Assembly: GCA_013416795.1 (NCBI GenBank)
Contig: RQSC01001079.1
Span: forward strand, 76,629 to 140,628
DNA from: Prasinococcaceae sp. CCMP 1430
Taxonomy: Eukaryota > Plantae > Prasinodermophyta
Reading direction: 5' to 3'
DNA length: 64,000 bases
Shown piece by piece: positions 3,783 to 64,000 of the stretch; positions within the stretch are counted from its first letter, which is position 1, and every line of letters begins with the position of its first letter. The translations under genes and the position numbers were made by a program. The notes beneath the pieces were generated by a model that did not search any database, was not told the origin of the DNA, and saw nothing but the letters and a program-made list of their open reading frames with translations.

Positions 3783-6700
3783 TCACAGAAATGTGTAATT
3801 ATAAAAATGCTGTAAAGTACCAACGGGCGACGCTCTCACGCTTTTCCGGAAGCTCCTGGCTGGCTGCTGTCTGTCTGTGTGTGGGCGGCGTATCGCATCG
3901 GCGGAGGAGGAGTGACTGAGTCTGAGCGCGCTGAGCTCGGCTGTGGCACCGCGCGCGCGCCGTCCGTCCGTCCGTCCGTCCGTCCGTCCGGATGACTGCA
4001 CCGCTGGGCGATCGCGAACGGATCTCTGATCCGCTGCTCGACGATGCCCTGCTGGGTGGTGCTGCTGCCAGGCCGGCTCGCGCGCGCACGCGTCTTCCCA
4101 CGGACGGGCCAGTACGGACCGACAGAGCAGTCCTTGAGCCCGCGAATGATCCGGTGGCCGTGGGACCTCGCGGGCGCCGCGGGATGCCGCGTCGGATGGC
4201 GTGGGAGCCTCGCCCTGCGCCCGGTGGGTCTGTGTGTGTGTTGTTGTTGCTGTGTGTGTGTGCGTCCGACGGTACAGAGCAGCGGTGCCTCTCTCTGCGT
4301 GCGCGAGCAATGCGCTCGCGTGTGTTTCGAGCGCGGGCGCGCGCGCGCGCCGTCGGCGCCGTCCCGCCAAAAAGCGCGCGCGCGGATCGCGCGTGTGCGG
4401 CCGAGAGNNNNNNNNNNNNNNNNNNNNNNNNNNNNNNNNNNNNNNNNNNNNNNNNNNNNNNNNNNNNNNNNNNNNNNNNNNNNNNNNNNNNNNNNNNNNN
4501 NNNNNNNNNNNNNNNNNNNNNNNNNNNNNNNNNNNNNNNNNNNNNNNNNNNNNNNNNNNNNNNNNNNNNNNNNNNNNNNNNNNNNNNNNNNNNNNNNNNN
4601 NNNNNNNNNNNNNNNNNNNNNNNNNNNNNNNNNNNNNNNNNNNNNNNNNNNNNNNNNNNNNNNNNNNNNNNNNNNNNNNNNNNNNNNNNNNNNNNNNNNN
4701 NNNNNNNNNNNNNNNNNNNNNNNNNNNNNNNNNNNNNNNNNNNNNNNNNNNNNNNNNNNNNNNNNNNNNNNNNNNNNNNNNNNNNNNNNNNNNNNNNNNN
4801 NNNNNNNNNNNNNNNNNNNNNNNNNNNNNNNNNNNNNNNNNNNNNNNNNNNNNNNNNNNNNNNNNNNNNNNNNNNNNNNNNNNNNNNNNNNNNNNNNNNN
4901 NNNNNNNNNNNNNNNNNNNNNNNNNNNNNNNNNNNNNNNNNNNNNNNNNNNNNNNNNNNNNNNNNNNNNNNNNNNNNNNNNNNNNNNNNNNNNNNNNNNN
5001 NNNNNNNNNNNNNNNNNNNNNNNNNNNNNNNNNNNNNNNNNNNNNNNNNNNNNNNNNNNNNNNNNNNNNNNNNNNNNNNNNNNNNNNNNNNNNNNNNNNN
5101 NNNNNNNNNNNNNNNNNNNNNNNNNNNNNNNNNNNNNNNNNNNNNNNNNNNNNNNCTCCGCCCGCGCCGCGCACGCCGCCGTCCTCCTCGTCGGCGGCGC
5201 CGTCGCCTCCCACGCGCGCGCCGCCGCGCTTGAGCGCCTCGACCTCGAGCCTGAGCAGCCCGTTGCTGCCGGTGAGCTCCATGAGCTCCACCTCGAGCGC
5301 CTGCGCCGCAGCTGCGCCGCGCTCGCATCTGGTCGCGCGGCCGTCCGCGGCCGCGGCGAGATCCTCGGCGGCGGCGATGCGCGCAGCGGCGGCGGCCTCG
5401 GCTGCCGTGCGCCCCGCGGCTTCGCCCTCCTCGCGCGCGCGAGCCTCGGCGGCCTCGTGCGCGCGCTGGAGCCCTGAGCGCATCGCCTCCTCGATCTCGT
5501 CGGCAGCCGCGCGCGCCTGCGCCTCGGCGGCCGCGATGAGCTCGGACTGCGCGCTTCGCGCCTCCCGCGCATCTGCCGCCGCGGCATCGCGCTCGCGCAG
5601 GGCGTCCGCCAGCTTCGCCTCCGCCACGGCACGCAGGCGCGCGTCCAGCGCCGCCTGCGGCAGTCCCTCTCGCAACGACGCCAGCTCGGCGTGCAGCGCC
5701 GACACGAGCCTGTCCGCCTCCTCGGCGGACTCCTCCGCCGCCGCGCGCGCGATTTCGAGCGCGGCCGCGTGCTCGATCGCGGCGCTTTCGAGCGTGGCGC
5801 GCATGCGCTCGACGTCCTCGGCGCATTCCGCACGCGCGGCGTCGACCCTCGCCTCAGCCGCGGCGCCCGCCTCCGTCGCGAGCTGTTCCGCTCGCGCGCT
5901 GAGATCTGCGGCCGCCTCCTCCGCCTGCGCCAAGCGCGCACGCAGCTCGGCGTCGGCGTGCGCGCTGGCGACCTGCACCTCGCGGAGCTCCTCGCGCGCA
6001 GCAGTGAGCTTCGCAGCCAGCTCGGACCGCTCAGCCTCGACAGCGGCGGCATCGGCTAGCTGTTCGCGCGCATGCGCTAGCTCGGTCCGGAGCGTCGCGT
6101 TTTCATCCGCATGCGCGGTCGCGCGCGCGCGAAGATCGTCTATTGCGCTGCGTGCGGCCGCCGCGTCGGCATCCGCCACTTCTTGCGCGCGCGCCGCGCC
6201 CACAACCTGAGCCTCAGCCGCGGCGGCGGCCGCCGCGCCGCGCTCGGTCGCGAGCGCGCGAGGGTTTGTGCGGCTGGGGCTCGGGCTCGCGCAAGGGTCT
6301 GGGAGCGCGCTAGCACCATCCCCAGGTGGGGGCAGGCCCGCTCGCCGCTCCGCCTCGCTGGCGCTCTCTGCTCGCTCTGCCTTCACATGCGCCGACGCCT
6401 CTGGTGATGACTCGGGGCTCAAGTTCTCGGCCATGAGTATCATCGCGTCGAGCGCACCGATGGCAGCGGGCGCACCGCATGCGTCTCCCTTGCTGCCGCT
6501 TTCCTGAACGCAATCGCTCGAGTCTCGTCTCAAGGCTGACTGCACGTTCATGTGCTTGCTGGTGGGCGTGGCCTCCGGCCATCCTGGCATCTGAGCGCCT
6601 CCCATCGAGGGCGTTTGGTACGCCTCGGCGAGGTTGACGCGCACGTTTGCGAGGCCTGAGAGAAGCGGCGACGGCTCTTGGGTGGGTGGCAGCTGCGTAT

Positions 6701-9993: not shown

Positions 9994-10436
9994 TCACTCC
10001 ATGTCGTCGGGCCCCACCCTCGCCGTCGCGATTGCCCCTCCCGCCGCCGCCGCCGTCACCCCAGGCGACGGCGGCTGGGCGTGCCGCGCGTGCTGCGCCT
10101 GCTGCGCGAGCGGTGGAGGAACGTGCCCCACCTTGGGAGGCGCTTGCTGGTGCGGCTGCCGGAGCTGCTGTTGCTGCTGCTGAATGAGCTGCTGCTGAAA
10201 TAGCTGGTGGCGGTGGCAGTGGCCGTAGCCTTCTCCATGCTGCTGCTGGAAGTGCGGCTGTTGCGAGTGGCGCTGGGTTTGAGGGTGCTGAAGGTGATCG
10301 TTGCCCTCCGTCGCGGCGTGGAAGGCGCTCTCGGCCTCCTCGCGCTCGTCGCGCAGGAGCTCGGCGAGCTCGGCGAGGGCGGCGGCGGCGGCGGGCTCGC
10401 CGGCGGCCAGAGCGGCAGCGTGGCGCCCGGCGGCCG
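9994..10436 (-). CDS. 3' fragment of a hypothetical Gln/His-rich protein; 5' part lies in or beyond the gap
   Basis: AELAELLRDEREEAESAFHAATEG...polyQ...PDDME*, with GC-rich third codon positions. The segment 10693-10860 may be an upstream piece of it. Confidence 0.45.
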
Positions 10437-10703
10437 NNNNNNNNNNNNNNNNNNNNNNNNNNNNNNNNNNNNNNNNNNNNNNNNNNNNNNNNNNNNNNNN
10501 NNNNNNNNNNNNNNNNNNNNNNNNNNNNNNNNNNNNNNNNNNNNNNNNNNNNNNNNNNNNNNNNNNNNNNNNNNNNNNNNNNNNNNNNNNNNNNNNNNNN
10601 NNNNNNNNNNNNNNNNNNNNNNNNNNNNNNNNNNNNNNNNNNNNNNNNNNNNNNNNNNNNNNNNNNNNNNNNNNNNNNNNNNNNNNNNNNNNACGCCGAT
10701 GCC

Positions 10704-24583: not shown

Positions 24584-25688
24584 TCAGCGCTTCTGGCTCT
24601 GCAGTATGAGCGAGTACGGGTAGGCTTTCCCCCCGTCGTTGGGCAGGGCGGGCTCGCCCACCCAGCGAACGTCGAAGCCCGCGGCAACGAGCATGTTGAT
24701 CCAGCTGCCGAAGGCCATCGCTTTCCACCCGGCACCTGACGCGACCTCTTCGAGCGTTGGATGCGCGTCTAGCAGGATCAGCGTGCCTGAGGGGTTGGGT
24801 GCGGTGGAATGGGGCGGGATGATCGCGGTTGAGGGGGATGGAGGGCATGCCGGGGACGCGCCGTCGGCGCGGGCGTGCAGACGAAGTGTCGGTCAGCCGT
24901 GGCTCAGATGAGAAGGGCGGGCCGAACGCGCGCAGGCACCTCGCGCCGCACCTCCGGGTTTGAGCGCGGCGTGCGCCTCCTTCAGCACCTGAGTGGGATC
25001 GTTGACGCCGCCAAGCACCCAAGGCGCCATCACGAGGTCAAACACGCCAGCCCTGCATTCGCGTCGCGCGCGCATGCGAGCGCAGATAGCATGTCAGCGC
25101 TTCTCATTGGGCACGCGCGCAGAGGGGATGGGCTGGGTGGCACAGAGCGTGCATGGGCAAGAGAAAGGTGCTCAAGGGAGGGGAGGGAGGATTAGAGAGG
25201 CGGGGGCGCCGCGCGCAACGTACTTGATGCCCGAGTCGCGGTGCTCGCTCAGGAGAGGCGACAGGTTGGACGCGTCGCAGCACGAGACGGCGACGCGCGG
25301 CGGCGGAGAGGCGCGGTACCGACCCGACGATTGCAGCGTCTGCCACGCCTCACCCCGCACACGCGCAACCGTGCCACTGTCTGCATCCACGCCCGCCGCG
25401 AGGACCGCGCCGGACTGCAGCGCGACGGATACCAACGTCGCCTGACCCGGCGCCCCGCAGTTGAGATCGAGAAACGCCCACCCCTTTGCTTTCGATCCGC
25501 CTGAGGTCTTCTGCTGGCCGCCGAAGTCGTCGGCGAACGCACGCACGAGGTCCACCACGCGGCGCTCGGCATCCGCCGCCGCGGCGGGCCACGCATCGAG
25601 CATGCCGCGCGCTGCGGCCGCTTCCCAACTGCCGGCGCGCGGCGATGCGCCGCAGCGGCACGCTCCTGCGGCGGCTCGCGGCGGCGGC
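24584..25688 (-). CDS. Class I SAM-dependent methyltransferase (exons >25688-25224, 25052-24952, 24786-24584); 5' end crosses the gap
   Basis: Motif I FLDLNCGAPG; CCDASNL; FDLVMAPWVL...DPTQVLKEAHAALKPGG|TLIL. Three canonical GT-AG-joined exons. Confidence 0.75.
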
Positions 25689-25958
25689 NNNNNNNNNNNN
25701 NNNNNNNNNNNNNNNNNNNNNNNNNNNNNNNNNNNNNNNNNNNNNNNNNNNNNNNNNNNNNNNNNNNNNNNNNNNNNNNNNNNNNNNNNNNNNNNNNNNN
25801 NNNNNNNNNNNNNNNNNNNNNNNNNNNNNNNNNNNNNNNNNNNNNNNNNNNNNNNNNNNNNNNNNNNNNNNNNNNNNNNNNNNNNNNNNNNNNNNNNNNN
25901 NNNNNNNNNNNNNNNNNNNNNNNNNNNNNNNNNNNNNNNNNNNNNNNNNNNNNNNNNN

Positions 25959-28745: not shown

Positions 28746-29265
28746 GTGCCGTGCGTGTGAGGCGCGCACGTCGCCGCCACGCGTCGCCGCTGGGCGCAGC
28801 GGCGCCAGCGCCCGCGCGCAAGCNNNNNNNNNNNNNNNNNNNNNNNNNNNNNNNNNNNNNNNNNNNNNNNNNNNNNNNNNNNNNNNNNNNNNNNNNNNNN
28901 NNNNNNNNNNNNNNNNNNNNNNNNNNNNNNNNNNNNNNNNNNNNNNNNNNNNNNNNNNNNNNNNNNNNNNNNNNNNNNNNNNNNNNNNNNNNNNNNNNNN
29001 NNNNNNNNNNNNNNNNNNNNNNNNNNNNNNNNNNNNNNNNNNNNNNNNNNNNNNNNNNNNNNNNNNNNNNNNNNNNNNNNNNNNNNNNNNNNNNNNNNNN
29101 NNNNNNNNNNNNNNNNNNNNNNNNNNNNNNNNNNNNNNNNNNNNNNNNNNNNNNNNNNNNNNNNNNNNNNNNNNNNNNNNNNNNNNNNNNNNNNNNNNNN
29201 NNNNNNNNNNNNNNNNNNNNNNNNNNNNNNNNNNNNNNNNNNNNNNNNNNNNNNNNNNNNNNNNN

Positions 29266-53975: not shown

Positions 53976-54084
53976 CCTCGCTGCAACCCCTAACATGCGG
54001 CGACGTCCGCCAGCGGCGCTCGCGCCACAGCGCGCGCGTGCGTGCGCGTGCCCCCTCCACGCCGCTGGGGCGCGCGAGGGGAGA

Positions 54085-55834
54085 ATGGCGGCTGAGGGCG
54101 GGGCGGCAGCGGCGCTGGCGCGCGCCGCGCTCGGATGCGGCGAGGCGGGCGAGCACCGGCGGCGGCGCGGCGGCTATCGCGGCCGAGTTGGCCCGCTCGA
54201 TGCGAGGGGCCGAGGGGGGTGGCGCCCTCGACGGGCCTGCGCCGGCAGTCACCCGCGCGGACTTCATCCGGGTGCTCGGCGGCGAGGACGCAGCCGCTAT
54301 CGGTGCGGAGGCGTCCGCGAGCGCTGGCGCCGGCACCGGCGCCGGTGGCGGCGGCTGCGTTGGCTGCCTGGGCGTGCTCGAGGGTCTTGCCTCGGGCAGC
54401 GGCGGCGGTGCTCGCAGCATCGGCGCCATCGTCGCTGCCGCGCGCGCGAAGGGCCACGACTTTGCGGTCGACGGCTTCGGGCTGGAGGTAGCACTCCCTG
54501 CGAGCGTGCTCGTGCGCTCCGCTGCGCTACGTGCGGCCGCGTGCGCAGCGGTGGCGGACTCGCCGCAGCGGCTGCCGACTGCTCCCGGAGTGAAGGAGCT
54601 GATCAAGCGCGCGCTCACGCCAGCGCTGGAGGCGCGCCTGGGGGCGAGGCAAGCGTCCGAGTCGGGATTACGACTGAAGGTAGAGTACACGCACGCGGGC
54701 GCGGCACGAGAGTGCGAGGCGGTCGCCCGGCGTGGAGGCGCACAGCCACCGCGCCGCGGCCGCAAGCGGCCTTGGCAGCGGCGCAAGTGGGAGAAGGAGG
54801 CCGGCGAGGCCGACGACAGCGACGCGTGGATGGTCAATGCGGCAGCTGTCACACGCGCGCTCGCACTGATGGGTGACGACGAGCTGGAGCGCACCGTAGG
54901 TAGCTGCCCGATGCCCGCCCCGGATGCGCCAGCAGTGGCCGAGGTGAGCGTGCATCGCGAGGGGATCTTCGTGGGCGGGCGCTACCTCAAGCTCTGCCGC
55001 GGCATTCCGCAGTCGCCGTGGCTCATGTCTCCCGTGTGGGAAGCAGCCGTGGCGGCAGGCGAGGCGCCCGCCCACACCGCGTGCCCGCCGGGCGACGAGA
55101 GCCACTGCGGGCCCGACGAGGACTTGGGCGAGGTGCCCAGCCTCGCCGATAGGCTGGGCGCGGCGCTCGCCCCGGTCTTCGGCGCGAGCTCGTGGCGTTT
55201 CCAGGCTGCGGGGCGCGAGGATGCGGACGTGCGCATGCTTGGATGCGGGCGCCCTTTCATTCTGGAGCTGATGGATGCCAAGACCACCTCTGCGAGCCCG
55301 CACGAGCTTGCGGCGGCTGCGTCGGCCGCGGGCGTGGGGGCGGATCGCACAGGTGTGGTGGCGGGGATCAATCTGCGCGTGGTGGGAGCGGACGCACTCA
55401 AGCAGCTGCGCGAGGGTGAGACGGACAAACGCAAGTGCTATACGGCAGTGGTATGGATGAGCGAGCCCATGGATGCCGAGAGGGCCGCCGCGCTCGCTGC
55501 AAAGCGCGACATTACGGTGCACCAGGCGACGCCCGTCAGGGTGCTTCACCGGCGCTCCCCGATGGTGCGCCCGAAGCTCGTCCACTCGATGCGCGCCCGG
55601 CCACCGGCCGGGGCCGAATGGCGACCGGGCGAGCGTCACCACTACGCTGTGCTCGATGTGGAGGCGCAGGCGGGCACGTACATCAAAGAAGTGGTGCACT
55701 CCGACCACGGCCGCACCGTGCCTAGCCTGGGGGACCTCCTTGGTTGCGAAGCGGACATCATGCAGCTCGACGTGAGCGAGGTCGTGCTCGACCTCTTCAG
55801 CGACAACCCACTCGAGGAGGCCAAAGCTCCGTGA
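54085..55834 (+). CDS. PUS10: tRNA pseudouridine synthase Pus10; start uncertain (ATG 54085 is out of frame, ATG 54200 is in frame)
   Basis: IFVGGRYLKLCRGIPQSPW, FQAAGREDADVRMLGCGRPFILEL, QATPVRVLHRRS and AQAGTYIKEVVHSDHGRT.PSL. Confidence 0.93.
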
Positions 55835-59694: not shown

Positions 59695-59828
59695 GCGCCG
59701 AGAGGAGCCGTTCGTCGCTCAAATACAGTTCAGTTCGTGCGTGCATCGTTGCCTTTCTTCGCGCCCGCGCCTAGAGCGCGGGCGCGCGCGTCGCTTGCGA
59801 TTGCTTGGGAACCCTGGCGCGCGCGCGC

Positions 59829-62213
59829 TCATATGTCGTCGTCCAGCCCGCCCGACAGCTCGTCGTGCGACGCCAGCGGCTCGAAGTCGCCGCGCATGGT
59901 CTGGTACTCGGCGGTGGCCGCGCCGCTCCCGCCGAACGGCAGCGCCGCCACCAGCGCTCCCCAGGCGCTCCCCGCCGCGTCGCCTGCGGACCGCAGCCAG
60001 TCGCTCACCGGCATGCCCATGAAGTGCGCCCCGCCGAGGGCGACGCCCGCGATCAGGCCGACGACCAGCACGCCCACCACGAACTTGCCGAAGCCCGACA
60101 TGCCCTTCTTGCCCCCCCCGCCGCCGCCGCCGCCGCCGCCGCCGGCGTGGCCGGGCACGCCGTGCTCCTTGCCGTCCCAGGCGTCGCGCCAGAAGCCCGC
60201 GGTGAAGGGCGGCGTCCCGCCCTTCATGTCGCAGCGGTCGCCGCCGATGTATCGGAGCAGCGTGTCCATGTTGCGCGCGTACCGCTTCTCGTCGATGGCC
60301 GGGCACGCCTGCACGGACCCCGCGCTGATCGCGTTGAGGCACGCGCCGTCGGCGCCGCGCACGGCGCCGTAGTCGCACTCGTAGTCGCTGCTCGAGCACG
60401 CGCACGGCTCCACGGTGGGCGGCGAGTGCTCCCACTCCTTGCCGTTGTAGCAGATGGCGGAGGGGCGGCGGCGCGTCATGGTGACCTTGGCGCCCAGCAT
60501 GCAGCGGTCCAGGTGCCACTCCTCGTAGTCGGCGGCCGAGCAGCGCTTCAGCGTGTCGTCGTCGAGCTTGGCCTCGAAGTCGACGAGCACGACCGCGCCC
60601 TTGAGCTCGTAGTCGTCGCCGACGATCACGCCGTGCGCGACGAACCTGCGCGCGGCGAAGTCGCCCTCCACGCGGATGTTCTTCACGTGCATGGGCTGCG
60701 GCAGCGCCACCTTGTGCCACTGCGTGCGGCCGCCCGCGCTGGCGCCGGCGCTCCACTGGAGGTGGTCGGCGGGCCCCGCCATGTAGTGCTTCGCGGCGAC
60801 GATGATCCCGCCGTGGTCGCCGTACTCGTACACGTGCGGTCCCTTGAGCGTCTCCTCCCACGTCTGGCCGCCGTCGCGCGTCAGGTACGTGTTGACCAGC
60901 CCGGACTCCGTCTCGAGGTGCGCGCCCATGTTGCCCGTGGCGATGGCGTAGCCCGGCGCGGAGGGGTGCGAGTAGAAGCCGGTGAAGCCCTCCTCGTACC
61001 ACGAGTTGGAGCCGTGCAGGTGCAGCGAGCACTGCGGCAGGATGCAGTCGGTGGGCGCACCCTCGGCGTCCTTGCGCGGCGCGGGGATGGGGGCCCACTC
61101 GCCGCCGCGGTTGTGCGTGATGACGGTGACCACCTGGGGCTGCGACTGCGACTCCGGGTGGAGCGCGCGGTTGACCAGGAGCACGCCCTCGGGGATGGTC
61201 GCGTCGCCCGCGCCCGTGTCGAAGCGCACGCGGCTGATGTCGGCGCCCAGCTCGCCGACGGTGGCCGCCGGCAGCGACAGCGCGAAGAGCGTGTTGCGCG
61301 AGTCCGAGGTGTACACGTCGGTGAGGAAGTCGCCGGAGGCGCCGTAGTGTTGGCCGCCGTGCTGCACGCCCACCAGCGGCATGCCCTCGTCGCCGTCCGA
61401 GATGAAGAAGGCGCTGCTGGGCAGCTCGGTGGGGAAGCACATGGCGGTGAAGGCCGCGCCGCCGTCGTCGCTCACCATGAGCGTGACGCCGGCGGAGGGC
61501 TCGGGCGAGTCGCCGCCGGGCTTCTCCTCGCACGCGTTGGGCACGGCGACGTACAGCTTGCCGTCGAGCGCCTCCAGCACGTTGCCGCACTTGAGCACGT
61601 GCTCGTGCTGGCCCTGGAAGAGGTCGTCGCTGCGCACGAAGTCGATGTCGCCGTCCCAGCCGCCGGTGTGCGCGTGCGCGTGCGCCTGCCTCCGCTCGCC
61701 CTCCTCGTACACCGTGGCGAGCACGGCGAGGTCCTCGGCCGCGGCCTTGGCGGGCTCGTCGAGCGCGTTGGCCGCCCAGTCGTAGTCGACGAAGCTCACG
61801 ATGCGGCCCTCGCTGTTGCGCGTGAGGTTGGTCCACGCGGCGGGCCCGCCCCGTCCCAGCTCGTTCGCGAAGAGCAGGTCCTGCGCGCACAGGGCGCTCG
61901 GGTCGGTGAAGCACTCGAGGCGCACCACGTGGGCGAGCACGCGGCCGGCGGCCGCGGGGTGCAGCCTCACGGAGCTCAGGACGGCGCCGGCGCCGAGGTC
62001 GACGGGGAAGAAGGTGCGCCCGCGGTCGGCCGTCGCGAAGTGCGCGTCGTTCTGGCTCTCGAACAGCACGTAGTCCGGGAAGCGGTCGTCGGTGTGCGCG
62101 GCCAGGAAGCCGGGGGCGCAGCGGCCGGCGTACGCGCAGATGTCGAGCTGCGCGGGGTCGCGCATGCCGGGGGCGAGGGGGCTGCCGTCGGCGGTGAGGT
62201 CCGTCCACTTCAT
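59829..62213 (-). CDS. VPS10/sortilin-domain receptor; signal peptide/N-terminal exon not found
   Basis: BNR-like motifs (VSDDGGAAF, YTSDSRN, THNRGGEW, LTRDGGQTW), CSLHLH, 10CC cysteines, a TM helix and a cytosolic YQTM motif. Confidence 0.9.
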   Translation of the reverse strand: MKWTDLTADGSPLAPGMRDPAQLDICAYAGRCAPGFLAAHTDDRFPDYVLFESQNDAHFATADRGRTFFPVDLGAGAVLSSVRLHPAAAGRVLAHVVRLECFTDPSALCAQDLLFANELGRGGPAAWTNLTRNSEGRIVSFVDYDWAANALDEPAKAAAEDLAVLATVYEEGERRQAHAHAHTGGWDGDIDFVRSDDLFQGQHEHVLKCGNVLEALDGKLYVAVPNACEEKPGGDSPEPSAGVTLMVSDDGGAAFTAMCFPTELPSSAFFISDGDEGMPLVGVQHGGQHYGASGDFLTDVYTSDSRNTLFALSLPAATVGELGADISRVRFDTGAGDATIPEGVLLVNRALHPESQSQPQVVTVITHNRGGEWAPIPAPRKDAEGAPTDCILPQCSLHLHGSNSWYEEGFTGFYSHPSAPGYAIATGNMGAHLETESGLVNTYLTRDGGQTWEETLKGPHVYEYGDHGGIIVAAKHYMAGPADHLQWSAGASAGGRTQWHKVALPQPMHVKNIRVEGDFAARRFVAHGVIVGDDYELKGAVVLVDFEAKLDDDTLKRCSAADYEEWHLDRCMLGAKVTMTRRRPSAICYNGKEWEHSPPTVEPCACSSSDYECDYGAVRGADGACLNAISAGSVQACPAIDEKRYARNMDTLLRYIGGDRCDMKGGTPPFTAGFWRDAWDGKEHGVPGHAGGGGGGGGGGGKKGMSGFGKFVVGVLVVGLIAGVALGGAHFMGMPVSDWLRSAGDAAGSAWGALVAALPFGGSGAATAEYQTMRGDFEPLASHDELSGGLDDDI

Positions 62214-62220
62214 TGATCGG

Positions 62221-63396
62221 TTGGATGTGTGTGTGCGTGGGTGTGTGTGTTTTGGTTGTTGTTGTTGGGTTTTGGCGTTGTGTTGTGTTTTGTTGCGGAG
62301 GTGGGGATAAGAGGGAGGTGGGGATGTATGGAGATTGTGGTAGATGTTGATGATTGGGATGTGGATGAAGGAGGTTGTTAGAGTGGGTGGGTGATGTTAA
62401 GTTGGAATGATGTTTGTGTAGGTGTGGATGAGGTGTGTGGGGTTGTGTAAGTATGGTAGAGGTTGATGATGGGGATGTGGATGAAGGAGGTTGTTAGAGT
62501 GGGTGGGTTAGATAAAGTGGGATTGATGATTGTGTAAGTGTGGATGAGGTGTGTGAGATTGTGAAAGTATGGGTGTGTTAGAAGAAAAGAGGTTTGGGGT
62601 AGGGTGTGAGGGTTGTGTAAGGGAGGTGGGGATATGGGGTTGAAGAGGAGGTGGGGATGTATGGAGAATGTGGTAGAGGTTGATGATGGGGATGTGGGTG
62701 AAATGGGGATGTGGATGAAGGAGGTTGTTGTGTAAGTATGCGTGTGTTAGAAGAAGAAAGGTTTGGGGGGTAGGGGATGAGGGTAGTTAAGGTGAGGTGG
62801 GGTAGGTTAAAATGGAGATGTGAATGTATGGAGAATGTGGTAAAGGTTGATAATGGGGATGTGGATGGGGATGTAAGGAGAGTAGGGTAGAGGTGGATAA
62901 AGGGGATGAAGGTAGTGAATGGGAGGTGGGGTTAAAGGGGGAGTGGGGATGTATGGAAAAGAGGTTGGTGGGTAGGATGTGAGGGTAGTGATGGGGGAGG
63001 TGGGGATGTAAGGAGAGTATGGTAGTGGTTTTGGTGAATTTTATTGTAATATGTGGAAAATGGTGGGAAATGGGTGGAAATTAATGAAAATAATTGAAAA
63101 TTGAGGAAATGTTTGGATGTGTTTTGGGTAATATTGTTGGAATATTAGTATTATTGAATTTTGATGTAATATTTGTGTATTTTGATTAATATGTATGTTA
63201 AAATGTATGTACTGTATATTGTAAAGTTGGTGTAATTTAAAAAGTAGTTTTGATTAAAATATTAGTGAATGTATTTTGATATTGAAATAAAAAATAGGAT
63301 ATTTTGGAATATTATTTGAAATTTTGTGTTTATTGTGTTAGTTAAAAAAATTTGGATTATATTGTTTAGGGTTAGGGTTTGTATTGTATATTAAAA
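62221..63396 (+). repeat. Low-complexity G/T/A tract almost devoid of C, containing a degenerate ~65-nt minisatellite and ending in a telomere-like motif
   Basis: Only 5 C counted (62236, 62276, 62296, 62741, 63212). Unit gaggtggggatgtatggaga.tgtggtaga.gttgatgat.gggatgtggatgaaggaggttgtt recurs; TTTAGGGTTAGGGTTT at 63365-63380. Confidence 0.9.
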
Positions 63397-63403
63397 TGCA
63401 TGC

Positions 63404-63409
63404 AAAAAA
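63404..63409 (-). terminator. RNA polymerase III terminator (T6) of the tRNA gene
   Basis: TTTTTT begins 4 nt after the discriminator base on the minus strand. Confidence 0.8.
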
Positions 63410-63412
63410 GAG

Positions 63413-63514
63413 TTACCGCGCCGGGACTCGAACCCGGGTTTGGAGAGTGAGAGTCTCCTGTGATGACCACTTGAGCTTCTGAATCAAGGGATGCAGATAC
63501 TACACTACGCAGTA
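63413..63514 (-). tRNA. tRNA-Glu(CUC) with a 30-nt D-loop insertion (candidate non-canonical intron, 63498-63469)
   Basis: Acceptor stem TACTGCG/CGCGGTA plus A73; anticodon arm GGAGA-CTCTCAC-TCTCC; T arm CCGGG-TTCGAGT-CCCGG. Removing the insert gives a 72-nt cloverleaf with D-arm GTGTAGTGGTCATCAC. Confidence 0.88.
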
Positions 63515-64000
63515 CGCGTTCTTTTTTTTGAACGCTGTTGATGTGACCGCTAACAGGCCAGTATACATACCATACAGACAATGCAGAGAGACGTTTGCGT
63601 TCATTTTGATATGCACATGCTGTAGTCGCCGCCGTTCCAGTCCCCCATGTGATATCCACCCGGACGCAGGTGCAAAGGAAACACTCTCTCGATCGATCAA
63701 ACGAACGAAGCCCGAAGTTACATTCGATATTGGTATCATCGCGAACATCAAAATTCACAGCACTTCGCACGAGCCTACGGCCCGGTTTCGCGGCGGCGGG
63801 CGCCCCGGGCGGTGGGGCGCGCAGGTGCCGCGCGGGCCGTTTTGCGGTATGGGGCACGCGCAGCCTTTGCAATCCGCGAAATTTACTCGCGACAGACACA
63901 CAGGCCCACCCCGCGCCGGCTATTCGGCCAACAGCCGGCGCGGCGGCCGGCAGAGCCTCACGTCGCTCGCAGGCCGCGCGCGGCGCCACTCGGCGGCGCG

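Follow-up and report, generated by a model that had tools for sequence, protein, structure and literature searches.

The locus considered here lies on the minus strand of a 64-kb stretch of DNA, referred to throughout as the window, and comprises a tRNA-Glu(CUC) gene whose D-loop is divided by 30 nt that are absent from an ordinary tRNA (Table 1). The window has a G+C content of about 70 % and is a gapped scaffold, with N runs at 4403–5160, 10436–10693, 25688–25958 and 28823–29265 (1,720 N in all), so that listed ORFs extending across N stretches are artefacts. The close relatives of the proteins encoded in the window are TARA/ENA proteins at 61–64 % identity. The nearest named relative of the sortilin belongs to Monoraphidium (32 % identity), the Pus10 protein cluster is dominated by Streptophyta, and a plastid-type PAP-fibrillin gene is present in the window. 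These observations are consistent with a host of the green lineage and agree with the 'green alga' of the first-pass annotation, while falling short of proof. The Pus10 ORF itself (54038–55834, plus strand) carries the N- and C-terminal domains of the eukaryotic enzyme, a tRNA pseudouridine 54/55 synthase, and its only close relative is an ENA protein with 64 % identity.

The interval of about 1.1 kb that separates the sortilin start codon from the tRNA terminator (62297–63398) has an unusual composition, containing only 3 C on the plus strand, so that the strand on which both genes lie is G-free here. The interval begins with a G-rich portion that includes tandem repeats of 116 and 167 nt, and its final 380 nt are highly AT-rich, compared with 70 % GC for the genome. 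The tract upstream of the sortilin orthologue in a 61 %-identical relative (contig L001, 1–439) is also strongly G-poor and C-rich. A telomere-like TTTAGGGTTAGGGTT is found internally at 63365–63379, on the downstream side of the tRNA terminator and 25 nt away from it; the literature search on this motif returned primer noise only.

Table 1. Features of the interrupted tRNA-Glu(CUC) gene and its flanks, with window coordinates
Feature	Position	Strand	Basis
Complete tRNA-Glu(CUC) gene including the insert, position 1 through discriminator (102 nt)	63413..63514	minus	Direct reading; ARAGORN tRNA-Glu(ctc) after removal of the insert; partial Rfam tRNA match at 63421–63471
5' exon: acceptor 5' strand, U8, A9, D-stem 5' strand GUG, U13 A14 G15 U16	63499..63514	minus	Sequence; joined-exon cloverleaf
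Candidate intron of 30 nt in the D-loop, flanked by U16 and G18	63469..63498	minus	Exact and unique in the window; four boundaries give one product
3' exon: G18 G19, rest of the D arm, anticodon arm, 4-nt variable loop, T arm, acceptor 3' strand, discriminator A	63413..63468	minus	Sequence; Rfam partial alignment; comparison with L003
Anticodon CUC	63449..63451	minus	ARAGORN on the joined exons
A-box-like TAGTGTAGTAT, 9/11 against TRGCNNAGTGG, its final GG shifted 30 nt by the insert	63497..63507	minus	Sequence; established consensus
B box GGTTCGAGTCC, 11/11 against GGTTCGANTCC	63425..63435	minus	Sequence; established consensus
T6 run, likely Pol III terminator, 3 nt past the discriminator (A6 on the plus strand)	63404..63409	minus	Sequence
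A-rich upstream element: A8 at −8 to −15, with CAA ahead of it	63522..63529	minus	Sequence

Anatomy and expression signals of the gene

Read directly from the minus strand, the acceptor stem consists of 7 bp (UACUGCG/CGCGGUA) with a single wobble, U4-G69, and is followed by U8 and A9 and by a D stem formed by GUG and CAC. The anticodon stem of 5 bp (GGAGA/UCUCC) closes the loop CUCUCAC, the variable loop is AAAC (4 nt), the T arm has 5 bp (CCGGG/CCCGG) around the loop UUCGAGU, and the discriminator is A. The first-pass annotation, which had placed a tRNA-Glu(CUC) with intact arms at this site, agrees with the sequence in all structural details.

When the exons are joined in silico by taking out the 30 nt, ARAGORN returns a tRNA-Glu(ctc) of 72 nt, and the cloverleaf (−23.9 kcal/mol) lies close to the minimum-energy fold (MFE) of the joined sequence (−24.6 kcal/mol). 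The cloverleaf of a eukaryotic tRNA-Glu(CUC), with a 7-bp acceptor stem, a D stem of 3 or 4 bp, 5-bp anticodon and T stems, and a 7-nt anticodon loop with U33 and a purine at position 37, is obtained only without these 30 nt. The joined exons retain all of the nucleotides engaged in tertiary contacts (U8, A14, G15-C48, G18G19, A21, the T-loop UUCGA and A58), as well as the D arm and 4-nt variable loop typical of tRNA-Glu. Second lesions, in the form of broken stems, lost conserved bases or a lost promoter or terminator, were looked for in the exons and signals, and none were found. Judged by its sequence, the joined product is a bona fide, undecayed cytosolic tRNA-Glu.

An intronless counterpart for comparison is provided by a metagenome contig (L003) from an unrelated AT-rich eukaryote, which carries an ordinary tRNA-Glu(CUC) and was the sole match of a scan with a D-arm/anticodon-loop/T-loop pattern. 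This gene and the joined exons have identical anticodon, variable (AAAC) and T loops, and the D-loop of L003 is longer by one base. The acceptor, anticodon and T stems show many differences between the two genes, always as compensated pairs. The acceptor start U1-A72/A2-U71 had been described as unusual for tRNA-Glu; since the L003 gene also begins with U1-A72, that pair is not unusual for eukaryotic tRNA-Glu, whereas the A2-U71 pair does differ from the C2-G71 found in L003.

The consensus B and A boxes of Pol III type 2 promoters are GGTTCGANTCC and TRGCNNAGTGG, respectively, and both have recognizable counterparts within the gene. The distance between the A and B boxes is stretched to about 72 nt, and enlarged spacing of this kind is tolerated by Pol III factors. 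The T6 terminator reported in the first-pass annotation is indeed in place. At a G+C content of about 70 %, such T6-type runs are scarce, only 11 being present on the minus strand of the 64 kb, and there are only 7 runs of at least 8 A or T in the whole window, yet the Pol III signals of the gene survive. The 5' leader and the 3' trailer (63521–63535 and 63398–63412), which include the A8 and T6 runs with their neighbours, are 80 % complementary over 15 nt and could lengthen the acceptor helix in the primary transcript. With regard to codon demand, GAG accounts for 195 of the 217 glutamate codons (90 %) in five confidently identified genes of the window, encoding the sortilin/Vps10 protein, Pus10, an FHA-fibrillin, a synaptotagmin-like protein and CCDC113; a tRNA-Glu(CUC) would thus be the main glutamate decoder.

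The insert, its boundaries and its detection

The insert was read as exactly the 30 nt quoted in the first-pass annotation, and an exact match search finds a single copy of it in the 64-kb window. The trinucleotide AGU forms the end of the 5' exon and is repeated at the end of the insert. The cut may therefore be shifted by up to 3 nt in the 5' direction (leftwards in the RNA), and all four boundary choices lead to the same 72-nt product, in keeping with the sliding boundaries noted earlier. A mobile-element origin of the insert was considered and rejected, as neither a second copy with up to 3 mismatches in the window nor terminal inverted repeats were detected. An alternative excision that joins U8 to the terminal AGUGG of the insert, the register of both the partial Rfam match and the MAFFT gap placement, was also rejected; it leaves either a D-loop of 3–5 nt without G18G19 or no D stem.

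Both of the stems previously suggested for the insert, CUUGA/UCAAG and UCUG/CAGA, can form, and the minimum-energy fold takes the latter. On its own, the insert hairpin has an energy of about −7 kcal/mol (z = −1.8), which is only weakly better than chance. The MFE of the precursor is −33.3 kcal/mol (z = −2.3), and this structure retains normal acceptor, anticodon and T arms; the insert forms an imperfect hairpin in which exon positions 11–16 pair with insert positions 39–43, and a short substitute D stem arises between GUG at 45–47 and CAC at 53–55.

The bulge–helix–bulge (BHB) motif was searched for at the splice sites by hand and with scripts, the enumeration covering the four boundaries, both topologies, bulges of 1–6 nt and central helices of 3–5 bp, with the leader and trailer included. 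Neither a strict (3-4-3) BHB nor a relaxed hBH or HBh' form with a fully paired 4-bp central helix was found at any allowed boundary, in line with the earlier remark that a strict motif could not be drawn. The sole BHB-like form has a 3-bp helix, which arises in 11.6 % of shuffled inserts, and its energy of −16.4 kcal/mol is about 17 kcal/mol worse than the precursor MFE. In the absence of a 4-bp central helix from the enumeration, the locus departs from the BHB pattern of archaeal-type introns and of most introns of Cyanidioschyzon merolae. It instead has the profile of a non-BHB ectopic intron, namely a non-canonical position, no definable BHB and exons that yield a normal and needed tRNA.

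The expectation that standard models could miss the gene was borne out. ARAGORN in default mode reports no tRNA in the whole 64-kb window, and Rfam reports none in the window at the gathering score; in E-value mode, Rfam returns a partial tRNA match at 63421–63471, covering model positions 9–63, with 25.8 bits against a threshold of 29. When the unspliced region 63380–63560 (minus strand) was submitted to the intron option of ARAGORN, a tRNA-Leu(caa) with a 6-nt intron was called, which was dismissed as spurious. This miscall exemplifies how such a locus may be mislabelled by automatic annotation. A look-up of a spurious ORF that overlaps the tRNA returned no match.

The presence of the insert in genomic DNA is confirmed by a contig of 8,827 nt assembled from the DNA run X1 (word depth 39.5), which is unbroken and identical across 63381–64000, the insert included. 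In addition, 98 % of the sampled words of 59800–64000 are present in 14 DNA runs, some of them perhaps the data from which the window was assembled, so that this support for the insert is only partly independent. The X1 assembly holds no other record that matches the stretch, even partly, and its contig runs unbroken through the 56-nt 3' exon. In a k=31 graph assembly, this makes it less likely that another locus has the same exon, which is probably single copy. Three RNA runs in which the neighbouring mRNA is represented (X15, X17 and X18, one a probable transcriptome and two marine metatranscriptomes) give zero coverage of 63381–64000, which is uninformative because libraries of these unrecorded or metatranscriptomic types rarely contain tRNA. 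An orthologue was sought with an anticodon-arm plus T-arm pattern in a metagenome scan (0 matches), with the D-arm/anticodon-loop/T-loop pattern in a second metagenome scan (none, apart from the unrelated L003) and in a viral-contig scan (0 matches). Two TARA scaffolds that contain the neighbouring sortilin gene, one of the same species (L002) and the other of the 61 %-identical relative (L001), end 225–439 nt upstream of sortilin, short of the expected tRNA site.

Intron, pseudogene or retained arm

The locus is best explained, with a probability that we regard as favourable rather than high, as a working nuclear gene for tRNA-Glu(CUC), interrupted in the D-loop by an ectopic, non-BHB intron that is removed by the tRNA splicing machinery. 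Under this explanation, Pol III would transcribe the gene into a precursor consisting of about 102 nt and the flanking stretches, in which the insert is predicted to fold back as an imperfect hairpin without hindering the formation of the acceptor, anticodon and T arms. A tRNA splicing endonuclease of the Sen2/Sen34 type would then cut out the insert and a tRNA ligase would rejoin the exons, the expected product being a canonical tRNA of 72 nt that decodes GAG, which prevails among the glutamate codons. Because the splice sites are devoid of a BHB motif, their recognition would have to be of the relaxed kind with no central helix, as reported for some introns of C. merolae and most of those in the Guillardia theta nucleomorph. 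By analogy with the 'no H' class of the former and with the nucleomorph introns of the latter, the missing BHB does not exclude splicing. The D-loop position and the length of 30 nt, which are within the range of validated ectopic introns, also count for the intron. The non-canonical intron proposed in the first-pass annotation is favoured by the anatomy of the locus, its canonical exons, the Pol III signals and the codon demand, and its claimed rarity in green algae is upheld by the literature, while the lack of a BHB and the weakness of the insert hairpin speak against it.

The main competitor, judged unlikely but deserving serious weight, is a tRNA-Glu(CUC) pseudogene recently inactivated by the insertion of about 27 nt of filler with a 3-nt AGT duplication, any RNA made from it then failing to mature into a functional tRNA and translation being served by another Glu(CUC) gene. 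The AGT direct repeat at the two ends of the insert does resemble a small target duplication or a microhomology-mediated insertion, and the lack of a BHB of any accepted type in the enumeration points the same way. So does the AT-rich, repeat-rich and strand-skewed tract that adjoins the gene, and the absence of any transcript in the RNA runs was counted on the same side, albeit in libraries that rarely hold tRNA. Moreover, insertions in the D or T arm of eukaryotic tRNA genes are usually taken to mark pseudogenes when the gene is one of many copies (Yoshihisa review, PMC4090602). Against inactivation stand the integrity of all conserved and paired positions, of the B box and of the terminator, the lack of terminal inverted repeats and of another window copy of the insert, and the X1 assembly, in which a second locus sharing the exon appears to be absent.

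Two further explanations carry far less weight. It is improbable that the insert is transcribed and retained, either as an additional hairpin protruding from the D-loop (variable alpha region) of a tRNA or tRNA-like RNA, or in a Pol III transcript whose role lies outside translation. Positions 16–17 are solvent-exposed in a canonical tRNA, the insert forms a hairpin of its own in the MFE with normal acceptor, anticodon and T arms, and the substitute D stem (GUG 45–47/CAC 53–55) is available, with the partial Rfam match falling in that register. However, the hairpin is weak and in the MFE ties up A14, G15, U16 and the 5' strand of the D stem, which are needed for tertiary folding, and an arm of 30 nt in the D-loop is not known from any functional cytosolic tRNA. 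Least credible of all is an assembly or sequencing artefact that conceals a true gene without the insert, a possibility raised in the first-pass annotation; the scaffold does contain four N gaps, but the identical X1 contig at its depth of 39.5 speaks against an error of this type, as do the words shared with the 14 DNA runs, some of them possibly the source of the window.

The intron explanation may be extended from the single gene to the genome. In this broader and rather doubtful form, the host would be a GC-rich marine alga of the green lineage with nuclear tRNA genes disrupted genome-wide, as in Cyanidioschyzon, its sole or main GAG decoder being spliced in the D-loop at 16/18 without a BHB.

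Significance and relation to known disrupted tRNA genes

In reviews up to August 2026, ectopic nuclear tRNA introns are a feature of red algae and red-derived nucleomorphs, green algae being credited with canonical introns and permuted genes, and this contrast has been used to trace the ancestry of endosymbionts (PMC13578239, PMC3978253). The literature thus accords with the statement in the first-pass annotation that D-arm introns are known mainly from archaea and red algae of the Cyanidioschyzon type. If the present insert is spliced, this contrast between red and green would no longer hold, since an alga of the green lineage would have an intron in the D-loop of its main glutamate tRNA, and tRNA genes would be under-counted by standard finders in such genomes. 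The canonical eukaryotic endonuclease measures from the mature domain to position 37/38, with Sen54 touching the D arm (PMC3728597), which counts against a D-loop intron. Splicing without a BHB would make the locus a clean substrate for the question of how the eukaryotic endonuclease finds sites away from 37/38. Should the genome-wide reading also be true, recognition by the endonuclease would be independent of both the BHB and the 37/38 ruler, and the supposed split between red lineages (ectopic introns) and green lineages (permuted genes only) would fall as an evolutionary marker. A pseudogene, by comparison, would be an ordinary find.

The non-canonical tRNA introns of Archaea (Crenarchaeota and others) occupy D- and T-arm sites in canonical tRNAs, where the BHB is recognized by EndA. 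The present insert is like them in its D-arm placement and unlike them in the BHB, which was enumerated here and not encountered.

The closest parallels come from nuclear and nucleomorph genomes. In C. merolae, 42 ectopic nuclear tRNA introns have been described, 14 of which are located in the D-loop, with lengths of 11–69 nt and including 'no H' motifs (PMC3728597). As in that red alga, where interruption or displacement affects A and B boxes, a nuclear tRNA gene is broken here outside 37/38, with the end of its A box displaced, and some of the C. merolae introns likewise have no central helix; most of them, however, are of the hBHBh', hBH or HBh' type, and the present host is apparently green. 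The nuclear tRNA introns of Chondrus crispus, at 20/21 in the D-loop and 58/59 in the T-loop (PlantRNA 2.0, 10.1101/2021.12.21.473619), provide another D-loop precedent, in which tools of the tRNAscan type likewise miss the genes or call them pseudogenes and manual joining restores essential tRNAs. Splicing was established by RT-PCR and northern blots in C. merolae (PMC3728597) and validated by RT-PCR in Chondrus crispus; the candidate intron of the present gene is at 16/18. The D- and T-arm introns of the Guillardia theta nucleomorph, as summarized in two reviews (Kawach et al. 2005, via PMC4090602 and PMC3978253), are 3–24 nt long, mostly have no BHB and are nevertheless excised, their mode of recognition being described there as unknown. 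That nucleomorph is a reduced red-algal nucleus, in contrast to the GC-rich nuclear genome that harbours the 30-nt insert.

Within the green algae, permuted tRNA genes have been reported together with 'almost no' ectopic introns, the exception cited being an intron at 27/28 in the tRNA-Ser(UGA) of Ostreococcus lucimarinus (Maruyama et al. 2010, as quoted in PMC3978253), and a 2026 review gives the same picture (PMC13578239). The genes of the prasinophytes Ostreococcus and Micromonas resemble the present one as nuclear tRNA genes of the green lineage with a disrupted architecture that is handled by the splicing machinery, as would also apply to the tRNA-Glu(CUC) if its insert is an intron. Their genes, however, are permuted, with junctions at 37/38 that form hBH motifs, whereas the tRNA-Glu(CUC) gene is unpermuted and its break lies in the D-loop.
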